A stretch of 64,000 bases of DNA from Octopus sinensis (GCF_006345805.1 NC_043003.1:25296001-25360000), one strand, 5' to 3'. Numbered from the stretch's first letter, positions 11,625 to 59,317 are shown. The notes: a model not told the origin generated them from the letters alone. A program made the numbers and translations.

Positions 11625-11899
11625 AAGAATTAGTTCCCCTGATAAAGTATTGTCAATTCGCTCAAGCACCGGCTGTTTATGTATATATCTGATGGATGCT
11701 AATTTACGCTGCCGCTACATGTAGTTTCTATTTCTCAATGAGGCGTTAGTCTTATGTAAAGTTCTTTGATAATGAGACTGATGTCTTCATCGTTTGAAAT
11801 ACATACAAGTTGTTGCGAAAGTATCTCTACTTTTGTAGAGTTCAAGTTTGATCGTAATGTGAACATCTGATATATTTCATATTCGGACTGCATTGATAT
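11625..11899 (+). promoter_or_regulatory. Promoter motif and putative non-coding exon 1 of ZNF-2
   Basis: AAGAATTAGTTCCCCTG at 11625-11641 and donor TTGATAT|GTAAGTA (GT at 11900). It is on the same strand as ZNF-2 and matches five minus-strand cassettes. Confidence 0.7.
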
Positions 11900-12356
11900 G
11901 TAAGTATCAATTATTAGTACGAAAACAAGAAGCTACACTAAGATCTGTCTCAATATTAATTTGTTTGGTAGTTGCAGAATAATTTATTTTCTGGCACAGT
12001 ACTGTAACCACCCAAGTCTTGGTTTTGGAATTCTTTTAGTATTGATTTGTATAGAATTTTTGTTTTGTTGTTATTAACCTTGATTGACCAAACTTAAGAT
12101 CAAAGAAGAGTAAGCTCCTTTTAAAAGTACGATTTACCGTACGATTGAACCGACAGTAAAATTTAATGATAGAAATTAGGAAGAAAAAAAGTTTATCAGT
12201 AATTTTACTATCACTTAAATCGTTGTTATGCATGCTGTAAAATGATTATCTTTAGCATTTTACATCCGTTCCCAATCGAAGAATTTACCTTGATATCGCT
12301 TGTAAACAATGGAGTACGATTCTGGACTCAAATTTCTATATAGTGGTTAGTCAAGA

Positions 12357-13630
12357 GTGCATGGTTTATTATCCTTGCTCTCACGTGTGGATTGGCATTT
12401 TTTAGAAGAGATGGCATTTGAACGGACTCTAAATGACATTTATTTAACTGTGAATAAGCTGAATAACAATAAGTCTCCAGGGTCTGATGGAATCTGTGCA
12501 GAGGTCTTGAAATATAGGGATGACCCAATGGTTGAACTCTTAAATATATTATGAGGAAGTGCCTTAAGACTGGATTGATGCCATTTTTGTCTTCTTGTAT
12601 AAATTGGGGCCAAAGGATCTATGTGGTAATTTTCGTGGGATTTTGCTTTTGCCTGTAGTTGGAAAGGTAGTTGCCCACATTCTGTTAGACTGTTTAAATA
12701 CGTTCATAGTTCCAAATATAGTGTCTGAGTCTCAGTGTGGTTTTCACTTCTCCAGGGGCACAGTTGATTGTATCTTTACTATCAGACAATTTCAGGAAAA
12801 GTGCATTGAACAGAATTTTACCCTATACCATTGCTTTGTTGATTTAAGCAAGGTATTTAATACTGTTAATTGAAATGCTCTGTGGCTAATTCTAAGGGAA
12901 ATAAGTTACCCAGAAAAATTTGTAAACATGACCAGGGCTTTGCATCAAGATATGAAAGCTAGAGTTAATTTTGGTAGTAGACTTTTTGCCATGAAAATGT
13001 CTTTGCTTCTGCGATGGTCTGGCCATATTGTCCGAATGGCGGATGAATGCATACCCAAACAGCTGTTTTTATGGTGAGCTTGCAGAAAGGAAATGCAATC
13101 GATGTAAAAGAGGTTTAAAGATGGCATAAGGACTACCATGAAGTCCAGACTGAGTTGGATGGCAAGCATAGGTGTGGAGTGAAGTGAAAGCTTTTGAGGA
13201 GGCTAAGATGACATATGCAAGACTCAAGATAGATTTAAAGACGACTGTTGCAATTGAGAAGATGAACCTCAGTGACCTTTTTTGTACAAAGTTTGTGACA
13301 GATCATGCCTTTCTTTTGCTGAGCTTAAATCTCATTTGCAAACCCATGAACAACAAACCTCCACCAACTACTCTGCCTATATATTTGTACACATCTTTCA
13401 ATGCTGTGTATGCCATTGGGTCTACAAATCTAACGGAGACCTCAAAAGATATTTAAGATCCACAAAGATCAGAACTTAACTGCAGCTCTTGGTGGTCCAA
13501 ATCAGATATGCAATCTATGTGGGTGTCTTTTCAATACATTGGTTTAAAAAGTCATATCAGATGCCATGATGAATCTAAGGAGTAAGTACAATAGGTGGCC
13601 AGACTTTGCATAAGGAGTAGACAACCACTG
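12357..13630 (+). mobile_element. Degenerate, internally deleted RTE-clade LINE (family R2) with three C-terminal C2H2 fingers
   Basis: RT motifs NKSPGSDGI, NFRGILLL, ESQCGF...RGTVDCIFTIRQFQEKC and FVDLSKVF, then a jump to LRWSGHIVRMADECIPKQLF. The C-terminus has VCDRSCLSFAELKSHLQTH, CCVCHWVYKSNGDLKRYL and CNLCGCLF/GLKSHIRCH, ending at a (TA)n. Confidence 0.88.
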
Positions 13631-13681
13631 TATATATATATATATATATATATATATATATATATATATATATATATATAT
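13631..13681. repeat. (TA)n microsatellite
   Basis: About 25 TA units directly after the R2 LINE. Confidence 0.95.
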
Positions 13682-13919
13682 GCAGCTGAAGATTGCTCTA
13701 CATTTTAACTTGATGTAATGTTTGCATTGTTCAATTAAATGGAGTCATGTGAAAACGATTGTACTGCATTACCTCTGGATATCCTTGGTGATTATTTTGA
13801 TTATATATATATATATATATATAGAGGGAGAGAGAGAGAGAGAGAGACACCCACATACACACATCTGACTTTCAGTATCTTTTTATCTCTAATAATACTT
13901 GAGTTGACATTTATAGTAT

Positions 13920-13936
13920 ATTTTCTTTTATTTCAG
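13920..13936 (+). promoter_or_regulatory. Putative splice acceptor of the ZNF-2 terminal exon (TTTTCTTTTATTTCAG|ATT)
   Basis: Strong pyrimidine tract plus CAG, with the same TTTCAG|ATT junction as ZNF-1. Confidence 0.65.
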
Positions 13937-14252
13937 ATTTTCACAACCAATTGAGATAATCATTTCTCGTCCAAGCTACGTCATCAAATTCATATTTTGA
14001 AGACTGCAATTATGTGTAGTAGAACACCTGTTACATTGTTTACTTCTCTTCAGTTAAAATCTGCATTATTTCTTCTGATTTCCAACATACAATAAAAGCA
14101 CTTTTATGCTATATTCACATGTTAACTGAATGATTTTGTCATGAACTTAAACTTGAAAAGCTGACTAATTATTTTCACTTAGACTGTGTACTGGCTCTTT
14201 CAGATTTTGATTTAACTAAATGGCTGGAACTAGTTTAAGAATTTATTTTGAC

Positions 14253-14475
14253 TTAACCCACTTAGCATTTAAATTGGTTATATTTGACCCAAATATTCTA
14301 TCTGATTTATGTTCAGACTGGCCAGATCCTACCTATCACACCTACTCTCATTCTAGAAAATAAACAATCACATCATTGAAATCTCGAAGCTACATGATAA
14401 TATAGGATTAATTCAAAACAATGTGAATAAATAAGCATCATATTTGACAGAATAATCTGAATGCTAAAGGGTTAA
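14253..14475. mobile_element. TTAA-flanked MITE (piggyBac-like ends)
   Basis: TTAACCCACTTAGCATT ... AATGCTAAAGGGTTAA; an inverted homologue lies at 19747-19936. Confidence 0.8.
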
Positions 14476-14729
14476 AAATTACCAAATTTAGTTCTGGAAA
14501 AGGATTCTATCCTACAAGAAATTAGACTACAAATCTCTGCAGTTGAGAAAACTTCAAATTTAATGAGAGGGAAAGAGGAAAAAAATAGGACTATTTTACA
14601 GAAAGTATAGGTTTAGAATAATTCTTTGGAAATTTGTTCCAACATGTCCTAACCATGATGGCTAAAACAGACTAAAGAACATAAATCAGAAAAGTAAAAT
14701 AATTTTTGTGATTTGTAAAAGAGAACATA

Positions 14730-57106: not shown

Positions 57107-57438
57107 ATGTATATAATTACATTATATGCAATTTCTTCTTTAGAATTTCTATTTTCATCACATTATACAAAATCATTTTTCATTCTTTCCTTTATCTTAT
57201 TTATAAGAAATATTTTTCTCCCTATAAGTTTGACAATTTCTTAAAAGGCTGCAGAAAAACCAAACAAATTATTTGAGTTAGTTGTTCCAATAGGATTAAT
57301 TATGATATACTTAAGCCAAGATTTACATGTAATGGTTTACGTGTATTCTTCATAAATTCTTCCTTTCCTTTTCAAAAGATGATAAATAAGTTGATGCAGC
57401 CAAAGTGAAAAATCTTTATGTCCATATTACCCGATAAC

Positions 57439-57455
57439 CTGAAGTAAAAAAGAAC
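57439..57455 (-). promoter_or_regulatory. Putative splice acceptor, ZNF-6 (TTCTTTTTTACTTCAG|GTTATC)
   Basis: Homologous junction. Confidence 0.65.
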
Positions 57456-57970
57456 AAGTTCATGTATAAGAATTAATTTAATACTAAGGTTGAAAGTTAT
57501 AAGAAAAGAAAAAAAAAGAACCCAAAACAGTCAAGTTTATACATTGGAGTGAAAAGGACCATTTACTCATCCTTAAGGATAACTGATGACTTGTGCAGTG
57601 ACTTTGTTTAAAATGAAAAGTTGCACACCATCAATCTCGCTACCTTATTCATAACCATCTTCAATCCAGTGGCAAGACCTGGTCGAGACAACTGGGGATG
57701 TGTGTGTCTGCACATGTTTGTAGGTATACATATTTCTGCATGTAATTCCAATAAATCAGGATTGCTCACCCCAGAGAGTAGGAAAATGCACAATCTATGT
57801 TGAGGTCACAATTCAACCAATTGCGTACATTCGGTTTGTAGACAAGAGTTAGGTCTTTCTTTGTTCGTGAATGCCAGCGAAAATAAGAGGTTACTTATTC
57901 ATTCATTGACAAAATTAATGACTTTCAGTAGAACACTGCACGTACGTAGTTTGTGATAAAAGGATATATA

Positions 57971-58356
57971 GGCGCAGGAGTGGCTGTGTGGTAAGTAGCT
58001 TGCTAACCAACCACATGGTTCCGGGTTCAGTCCCACTGCGTGGCATCTTGGGCAAGTGTCTTCTGCTATAGCCCCGGGCCGACCAATGCCTTGTGAGTAG
58101 ATTTGGTAGATGGAAACTGAAAGAAGCCTGTCGTATATATGTATATATATGTGTGTGTGTTTGTCCCCCTAGCATTGCTTGACAACCGATGCTGGTGTGT
58201 TTATGTCCCCGTTACTTAGCGGTTCGGCAAAAGAGACCGATAGAATAAGTACTGGGCTTACAAAAGAATAAGTCCTGGGGTCGAGTTGCTCGATTAAAAG
58301 GCGGTGCTCCAGCATGGCCGCAGTCAAATGACTGAAACAGGTAAAAGAGTAAAGAG
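57971..58356 (+). mobile_element. Full-length, well-preserved family-A tRNA-derived SINE
   Basis: Complete head, internal TA/TG microsatellite and GTAAAAGAGTAAAGAG tail, with CpGs retained. Confidence 0.92.
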
Positions 58357-58946
58357 TATGTAATCATGTATGTGTGATTGAATGACCATAAAACTAATCT
58401 TTAACACAACATAATTGCTACATTAATCTCTTCGTAGTATAAACCTACGTATTTTATATTTTTTCGTTAATATCTGCTTTCCCATGGATTGGACGGGGTC
58501 TTACTTGCAGCAGAATTTTATGGCCAGATTGCAGATAATAGTGTCCCGAAAGGAACCGAGTGTTTGATGGAGTTGAACACAACACAGCTAGATATTGCCT
58601 TACCTACAGAGCAGACTGTGGATCCGACCAGGTACTAGATTGTTACCTGATAGGTGAGTTTCCTTAATACAACTGATCCATAGATGATCGAGTGGCAGTT
58701 GATATCTGATAAGCACATGTGGAGAGCTAAGTTAAGCAACCCAAAATAGCTTTACAGTAATATATAAATTGTATATCTTGGTACGTATATATAAATGTCA
58801 TTTTCTTCCCATTTACTTTCGTTCCGTTTGTCTAATTCCTTTCGAAATAAAATCTCTCGTTTCGATCACTCATTACAATAGTTAATAACTAGATATAATC
58901 AAACTAATGAAGTTCATAGGATAATCGTCTATTCCTTTGTCATCCC

Positions 58947-58988
58947 TTTTCTTTATATATATATATATATATATATATATATATATAG
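58947..58988. repeat. (TA)n microsatellite
   Basis: About 20 TA units in ZNF-6 intron 1. Confidence 0.9.
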
Positions 58989-59043
58989 CACATATATCTA
59001 TTAATGTATGTGCGTGTGGATATATATATAAATAAATACTTAC

Positions 59044-59317
59044 AAATCAGTTTAGTCCGAATGTGTGTAAAATAGCAGTCGCCCTCATATTTTGAGTCTT
59101 AATGTTGTCCAAGAAAACAAAATCAGCCCCACCACACTCACAAAACTTCTTGAACTTGAAAATGCAAACAACAAAGTAAACAAAGACATTTATCAATGCC
59201 TGCCAATATTTCAGATCTCTACGTAAGTTTATCTCACATCTGATAACCGTGTGATAAACAATAATTATTGTTATTGCAGAGATTTCTACAATAAACTACC
59301 AGGGGAACTAACTCTTG
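59044..59317 (-). promoter_or_regulatory. Promoter motif and putative non-coding exon 1 of ZNF-6
   Basis: CAGGGGAACTAACTCTT at 59300-59316 and donor CTGATTT|GTAAGTA (GT at 59043-59042). Confidence 0.72.

Follow-up and report, generated by a model that had tools for sequence, protein, structure and literature searches.

A short motif recurs six times in the stretch of Octopus sinensis DNA analyzed here (the window: 64,000 nucleotides, CM016865.1:25,296,001-25,360,000 of assembly GCA_006345805.1), each time on the strand of the adjacent open reading frame (ORF) for a C2H2 zinc-finger (ZNF) protein. Judging from its conservation, we consider it fairly probable that the motif is a regulator-binding site in a ZNF subfamily, and that the cassette carrying it comprises a promoter-proximal region and a non-coding first exon. 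According to this proposal, the cassette would have been copied together with its ZNF gene through tandem duplication, and transcription would start at or just around the motif. Exon 1, non-coding and about 230-285 nt long, would terminate at TTGATTTG|GTAAGT, and the removal of an intron of 1.6-4.7 kb filled with transposon debris would join it to the TTTCAG| acceptor of a single large exon, containing a 5' untranslated region (5'UTR) of 0.2-1.0 kb and the whole finger array. A sequence-specific DNA-binding protein would recognize AGAGTT-NN-TTCCCCT and thereby regulate promoter activity within the subfamily. We infer the transcription start, the use of the donor-acceptor pairs and the protein binding from the sequence.

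The motif and the donor of the cassette

Searching the window with the 17-mer and allowing up to three mismatches yielded exactly six matches, against a chance expectation of 0.22, and six matches were reached in 0 of 100 dinucleotide shuffles. The 5' end of the putative exon 1 was set arbitrarily at the motif. Thus delimited, cassette 1 spans 11625..11899 on the + strand (motif AAGAATTAGTTCCCCTG at 11625-11641, one mismatch; donor TTGATAT|GTAAGT from 11900; nhmmer E=1e-59), and would be the non-coding exon 1 of the gene at 14730-16073. It is the most diverged copy and contains an insertion of about 40 nt. The other five are located on the - strand: cassette 2 at 28649..28932 (motif 28916-28932, one mismatch; GTAAGT 28648-28643), cassette 3 at 32774..33039 (perfect motif 33023-33039; donor 32773-32768), cassette 4 at 42289..42521 (motif 42505-42521, three mismatches; donor 42288-42283), which has the shortest putative exon 1 (233 nt), cassette 5 at 52290..52572 (motif 52556-52572, one mismatch; donor 52289-52284), and cassette 6 at 59044..59316 (perfect motif 59300-59316; donor 59043-59038). 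The six strand-matched sites listed in a first-pass annotation of this DNA were all recovered, although the fourth starts at 42505 and not at 42506.

A donor of the form YTKATWT|GTAAGT follows all six motif copies, its last exon base (11899, 28649, 32774, 42289, 52290, and 59044) lying 233-284 nt from the first motif base, in agreement with the 225-285 nt that the annotation had given; the donor at 32774, missing from its list of five, is added here. The consensus TTGATTTG|GTAAGT(A/G)T is found in 6/6 cassettes. Homology among the cassettes starts about 25-60 nt 5' of the motif and ends about 15 nt past GTAAGT, and an nhmmer profile built from the six detects exactly those six in the window.

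When the six copies were aligned with local-pair MAFFT, conservation over 17 columns was highest, and equal, for the motif and the donor of the cassette, with a mean pairwise identity of 0.886 versus 0.51 overall, a value that no 17-column window matched in 5000 column shuffles. The annotation's observation that the motif is much better conserved than its surroundings is thus borne out, with the donor sharing this property. Over eight copies, i.e., the six of the window and two from an O. vulgaris locus described below, the positions AGAGTT and TTCCC(CT) are invariant, and the two central bases are the most variable. These least conserved central bases point to a bipartite protein-binding site rather than an initiator and, as judged from the aligned copies, the motif is an element of about 15 bp, AGAGTT-NN-TTCCCCT, kept by selection. 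A moderately conserved, CT-rich stretch reaches about 25 nt 5' of the motif. On the other side, a spacer of about 30 to 130 nt separates the motif from the next conserved patch; this variation means that the motif is not at a fixed distance from a downstream start, and it is compatible with a start at or very near the motif.

Both exon 1 and the 5' portion of exon 2 contain ATGs, but stops follow them and the frames differ between copies. A coding role was therefore rejected for exon 1 and for the acceptor blocks described below, which we regard as non-coding because their short ORFs lie in different frames. Structured-RNA (including miRNA-precursor), Rfam, and tRNA or short interspersed nuclear element (SINE) identities were likewise discarded for the cassette, since RNAalifold found no conserved structure in the cassettes (6 pairs, -3.24 kcal/mol) and the cassette had no Rfam or tRNA match.

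Acceptor blocks and the unit of duplication

A self-comparison of the window showed that, outside ORFs and dispersed repeats, the units have just two types of segment in common, namely the cassette and a block located upstream of the ORF. This acceptor block consists of a pyrimidine tract, TTTCAG|, and then about 150 nt of further homology, and the branch point, the tract and the acceptor are conserved behind five cassettes. The block of gene 14730 lies at 13897..14108 (+; nhmmer E=2e-30), with TTTCAG| and an exon 2 that would run from 13937, 793 nt before the ATG. On the - strand, the blocks are found at 23801..24013 (gene 22068-23213; exon 2 from 23973, 760-nt 5'UTR), 39341..39558 (gene 38170-39303; exon 2 from 39518, 215-nt 5'UTR), 49412..49622 (gene 47380-48615; exon 2 from 49582, 967-nt 5'UTR), and 57263..57478 (gene 55976-57106; exon 2 from 57438, 332-nt 5'UTR). 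The annotation had placed a TTTCAG acceptor 0.2-1.0 kb before each ATG; this holds for the distance in the five units (215-967 nt), but the acceptor at 57438 reads CTTCAG and the cassette at 33023 has none. With neither a ZNF ORF nor its own acceptor block between it and the next cassette, this copy is an orphan: gene 22068 may use it as an alternative first exon, or it may be a relic.

Pairing donors and acceptors gives predicted introns of 2037 nt (11899^13937), 4675 nt (28649^23973), 2770 nt (42289^39518), 2707 nt (52290^49582), and 1605 nt (59044^57438). The first contains an RVT_1 reverse-transcriptase fragment (12595-12873, +), and the intron at 23974-28648 contains a decayed Tc5/pogo-type transposase with HTH_Tnp_Tc5 and DDE_1 domains (24707-25819, +). 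Because of such transposon fragments, the introns do not align between paralogs.

The five complete units have the same order, cassette, acceptor, and ORF, on the same strand, and cassette identity correlates with coding sequence (CDS) identity across gene pairs (r=0.85), the 11625/14730 unit being the outlier in both. This collinearity, together with the parallel divergence of cassette and CDS, indicates that the duplication unit is the whole gene including its cassette, as the annotation had suggested in proposing a unit of promoter, non-coding exon, and finger exon. The paralogs share an amino-acid identity of 0.47-0.71 and an identity of 0.56-0.74 at four-fold degenerate sites. Whole-cassette pairwise identity (0.49-0.65) is not above that of the synonymous sites, and thus most of exon 1 is near neutral. 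Therefore, of the conserved cassette that had been proposed, what is maintained is the motif and the donor; on the alignment, these are the constrained islands (0.886), besides a few weaker patches. Since the paralogs are old and whole-cassette identity is low, the islands cannot be leftover similarity.

The orthologous locus of O. vulgaris

Exact-protein look-ups for transcript-derived contigs carrying the ORFs of the window revealed no such contig; only the 381-aa protein of gene 22068 led to an ortholog locus, in O. vulgaris, where the protein is identical. The O. vulgaris locus (from OX597820.1) and window 12068-33213, taken in reverse (L010), are collinear with 94-99.5% identity. The putative exons 1 of the cassettes at 28916 and 33023 together differ at 3 of 550 nt, none of them in a motif or donor: one substitution falls in the 284 nt of cassette 2 and two in the 266 nt of cassette 3. 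By comparison, there are 51 in 2967 nt of the adjacent 1-kb flanks (1.7%, p=0.037) and 215 in 7632 nt of all non-exonic sequence (2.8%, p=3e-4). This result suggests that the orphan cassette is still constrained. At the acceptor of gene 22068, the differences fall from 24 in the 250-nt window L010 8751-9000 to 3 in the window spanning the acceptor and 0 over the 760-nt 5'UTR.

Two further observations concern this locus. The whole exon 2 of gene 22068, with its 5'UTR, CDS, and about 1.9 kb of 3' flank (L010 9120-13088, i.e., window 20126-24094), is 99.5% identical between the two species and the intron about 96-97%, with the boundary about 120 nt before the acceptor. Either strong constraint acting on the entire mRNA or a haplotype of locally low divergence could account for this. 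In addition, window 30116-30755, located between the cassettes at 33023 and 28916, has no aligned counterpart in O. vulgaris, being a lineage-specific insertion or deletion. It overlaps ORFs at 30113-30668 that resemble a retroelement fragment and have no Pfam match.

Other octopus ZNF loci

Searches with full-length and partial ZNF proteins were dominated by generic poly-ZNF proteins and returned no ortholog of the window genes, but five distant octopus proteins were usable. Via these distant matches we obtained seven other octopus ZNF loci (L002-L008; about 178 kb) from O. vulgaris (GCA_951406725.2), O. bimaculoides (GCA_001194135.2), and another chromosome of O. sinensis. The acceptor-block profile matched all seven, at a distance of a few hundred nt 5' of the ZNF ORFs and in their orientation (for example, E=6e-11 in L008 and 4e-7 in both L007 and L004). 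The block, of about 200 nt, is thus present on several chromosomes in three octopus species and is far commoner than the cassette. The 20 acceptor instances collected from the three species display a conserved branch-point-like CTTAC or TTTAC, the tract CTGTTGTTTCTCTTTTATTTCAG| and then AWTATCAGATGACATTGGCAT, a pattern that, on sequence criteria, marks a genuine and strongly defined 3' splice site. About 150 nt on its exonic side, which belong to the 5'UTR and begin with AWTATCAGATGACATTGGCAT, are conserved without coding. As far as these loci indicate, the family-wide feature is the acceptor block and not the promoter motif.

The annotated gene models of O. vulgaris bear on this acceptor. The last CDS exon of P0153 starts exactly after the acceptor CAG (L002:21088), with a split codon; since this annotation combines Iso-Seq/RNA-seq, protein, and ab initio evidence into an EVM consensus, we take it as supportive and not as proof. 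The P0125 model uses an AG located 45 nt inside the block. In both P0153 (L002:10001-21184) and P0125 (L003:10001-16810), a ZNF exon is linked to the acceptor block of the ZNF gene that follows, which points to read-through or chimeric transcription, or to gene models that have been merged, within ZNF clusters; a non-ZNF exon (L002:19387-19602) is also part of P0153.

The motif itself, in the form AGAGTTATTTCCCC(T/C), was found in L002, which lies on a different chromosome (O. vulgaris OX597842.1). Its two copies there, at 7057 and 20719, read on the + strand, as do the acceptor blocks and ZNF ORFs that lie downstream of them. For the core AGAGTTAKTTCCCCT with at most one mismatch, these are 2 matches in 178 kb against 0.02 expected. 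The copy at 7057 is followed, 384 nt downstream, by AC|GTAAGTGTTATATATATATC, closely resembling what comes after the donor in the window cassettes. When L002 is compared with the window, alignment is possible for the motif core only, and the rest of exon 1 is unrecognizable. Looser searches of the other loci stayed at the chance level, with 11 core matches at up to three mismatches against 8.2 expected, and 9 against 8.9 in a loose-threshold scan with a position weight matrix (PWM). Motif-like matches with two or three mismatches were not accepted as true copies, as they sit in unrelated repeats.

Weighing the proposal against its alternatives

Several findings weigh against the proposal of a promoter-proximal regulator-binding site. 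No conserved TATA box at a fixed distance was found in the eight motif copies; A-rich or TATA-like strings (CATAAAG, GATAATG, and TTTAAAT) lie 5-12 nt 5' of the motif in 5/8 copies and are not conserved in the remaining three. O. sinensis and O. vulgaris differ little and unevenly, some 250-nt windows outside the cassettes being equally conserved; given this patchiness and the great closeness of the two species, the ortholog comparison gives weak support. With 95% identity over 79 nt, the two L002 copies count as one independent observation. Moreover, the copy at 20719 has no consensus donor before the acceptor, and the annotated model splices an unrelated exon further upstream, L002:19387-19602 (donor GG|GTAAGTAT), over it, making the motif intronic. 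Finally, the motif core is absent from six of the seven other loci, the nhmmer cassette profile had no match in any of the seven, and the profile and motif scans found neither cassette nor motif core upstream of the ZNF gene at 2151-4181 in the window. The element therefore cannot be called family-specific in the broad sense of the annotation and, on the loci compared, marks at most a ZNF subfamily.

An extension of the proposal, which we regard as speculative, is that AGAGTT-NN-TTCCCCT is the site of a dedicated regulator co-ordinating, auto-regulating or choosing the promoters of an octopus-specific ZNF subfamily on several chromosomes. As the site is about 15 bp long, such a regulator could be a multi-finger protein, possibly of the same expansion.

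It is in our view unlikely that transcription starts further upstream and that the motif acts in the RNA, as part of the 5'UTR, through an RNA-binding protein affecting translation or stability. The conservation is strand-consistent with the genes, the CT-rich sequence upstream of the motif is moderately conserved, and the exon 2 5'UTRs are unusually conserved, without differences in 760 nt between species, all of which speaks for such an element. Nevertheless, the secondary-structure prediction retrieved only 6 weak pairs (-3.2 kcal/mol), homology fades within about 25-60 nt upstream of the motif, and the second L002 copy is intronic in the annotated model.

The annotation had considered TTAGTT, within the motif, as an initiator-like (Inr-like) start. 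In that case, RNA polymerase II would start at the A of TTAGTT and the conservation would come from contact with TFIID. The arthropod Inr is TCAGTT, one base away; the motif is situated at the 5' edge of the homology block, and a 5'UTR would tolerate the variable spacer downstream. However, an Inr predicts an invariant +1 A in a YYANWYY / TCAKTY context, and the opposite was observed: the proposed +1 A reads A, A, A, G, T, and A in the six window copies (A and A in L002), and it is, with the next base, the least conserved position between invariant AGAGTT and TTCCC. Fifteen constrained bases are also far longer than an Inr. We thus hold this explanation to be improbable, and the claim of an Inr-like start is not supported.

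Less probable still is that the cassette is an exapted transposable element (TE) that supplied promoter and donor, the motif being a TE remnant. TE-derived promoters with donors are common, weak motif-like 13-15-mers exist inside repeats (in L004, a foldback element at 8011 and 8330; in L003 and at window 45206, a TE ORF), and two L002 genes with differing acceptor blocks share a 90-nt block at 95% identity. In contrast, each gene unit has exactly one cassette, whose order and strand never vary and which co-diverges with the CDS; apart from the two core sites in L002, no extra copies were found in the window or in the other loci. Neither terminal inverted repeats, long terminal repeats, poly-A, nor tRNA or Rfam similarity was detected, and the repeat-borne matches have different flanks and are at the chance level. 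The weakest alternative, that the cassette is residual duplication similarity or patchy gene conversion and the motif is functionless, agrees with the bulk of the cassette being no more alike than synonymous sites, but it is very improbable given that a 17-bp island at 0.886 stands beside columns at 0.1-0.4, that 5000 shuffles did not produce it, that conversion tracts would not be 17 bp long and common to six copies, and that the core has been kept in another cluster, on another chromosome of another species.

Gene and repeat content of the window

The window is AT-rich (GC about 35%) and encodes six C2H2 ZNF proteins of 376-676 aa, in which a domain search found C2H2 fingers as the sole domains, with no KRAB or other effector domain. 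The 447-aa ORF at 14730-16073 (+) belongs to the unit of cassette 1, and the genes on the - strand at 22068-23213 (381 aa), 38170-39303, 47380-48615, and 55976-57106 belong to those of cassettes 2, 4, 5, and 6, respectively. The sixth gene (2151-4181, -), without a detectable cassette, is preceded by a weak acceptor-like block at 4550..4657 (narrower, 4573-4636; -; TTTCAG|, exon start 4616, E=0.007). A non-finger N-terminal pattern, ME.E.C..(Q/E)VK...Q(S/T)..(I/T)D, is common to the ORFs at 2151-4181 and 14730-16073 and to the octopus proteins P0156, P0185, and P0125, and had no Pfam match; the four genes at 22068-57106 start inside degenerate fingers instead (MSSL...). Cephalopods have among the largest lineage-specific C2H2-ZNF expansions, with hundreds of genes. 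The gene content of the window fits this known expansion, which is discussed in PMC10547256.

A SINE-like repeat of about 160-230 bp has at least 10 copies in the window with 72-87% identity, including those at 10413-10635, 33402-33868, 49619-49855, 51840-52125, 52732-52942, 54818-55035, and 63759-63991. Several of them lie 0.2-1 kb upstream of cassettes, but their orientation relative to the cassette varies, which rules out the repeat as part of the unit. Microsatellites of the (TA)n/(GA)n type are present at 13627-13682, 53522-53640, and 58951-59038, the last of which begins directly after the donor of the cassette at 59300. A TE-like ORF (…SWLEDTKTEMAKKAQIGIYKGSNSLK…) is common to window 44972-45223 (+) and O. 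vulgaris L003 (about 25290-25400); its antisense contains a 15-mer with two or three mismatches to the motif core, probably a coincidence. In O. bimaculoides, L004:7940-8400 is an element resembling a foldback or miniature inverted-repeat transposable element, with inverted termini of about 80 nt that contain AAGTTATTTCCCTTG, located 1.2 kb upstream of a ZNF acceptor block.

Comparison with known gene clusters and significance

Each variable exon of the clustered protocadherins has a promoter with a conserved sequence element (CSE) of about 20 bp bound by CTCF, and these coding first exons splice to shared constant exons. The octopus cluster resembles this system in being made of tandem units that would each have their own promoter, in the single short element standing far above its surroundings, and in the first exon with a donor. 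It differs in that the octopus exon 1 is non-coding and each cassette has its own acceptor and coding exon, the orphan at 33023 being a possible exception, and there is no sign of CTCF or of stochastic choice in the octopus cluster. Were a dedicated regulator to exist, which we put forward as a tentative idea, its logic would parallel that of CSE and CTCF.

In mammalian KRAB-ZNF clusters, e.g., that of human chromosome 19, tandemly duplicated genes have non-coding 5' exons and one large exon for the fingers. The octopus genes are alike in their predicted 5' non-coding exon(s), in the fingers encoded in one terminal exon, and in a tandem segmental duplication that includes the promoter, but the octopus proteins lack a KRAB or effector domain and the promoters are AT-rich and not CpG islands. 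The binding site of ZNF143/Staf (SBS, TTCCCANAATGCAYYGCG) is found at many vertebrate promoters, including those of ZNF genes. Like the SBS, the octopus motif contains TTCCC, with which the SBS begins, and is a long (>15 bp) promoter-proximal element; however, the match is confined to the TTCCC pentamer, and nothing else of the SBS is present. The motif was thus not considered an SBS and, as the likeness ends beyond TTCCC, the identity with the proximal sequence element of small nuclear RNA genes was rejected as well.

The ZNF (FiNZ) genes of zebrafish chromosome 4 share promoter types, "sharp peak" TATA-type versus "broad peak," according to the summary in PMC10547256 (citing Hadzhiev et al., 2019, 2023). 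They constitute, like the octopus genes, a lineage-specific and massively duplicated C2H2-ZNF family in which paralogs have inherited a common promoter type, and FiNZ expression is co-ordinated. The zebrafish element is a TATA box defined by cap analysis of gene expression, whereas the octopus element is a bipartite motif of about 15 bp, with no conserved TATA seen. In the literature searched, which included searches for octopus ZNF promoters, no such element is described and the motif string does not occur, so the motif is apparently undescribed so far.

Tandem duplicates that keep a homologous promoter and 5' exon are the expected architecture, and the cluster represents a new instance of a well-known organization with an apparently undescribed motif; its value is practical rather than conceptual. 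The family-wide acceptor block provides a simple annotation rule for non-coding 5' exons, which are often missed or chained in current models. A selectively maintained promoter-proximal element common to a subfamily would offer a handle on ZNF regulation in cephalopods: the pattern AGAGTTNNTTCCCCT can be used for scanning octopus genomes, a PWM of the motif would serve genome-wide scans, and the element may be used as a bait for its binding factor.

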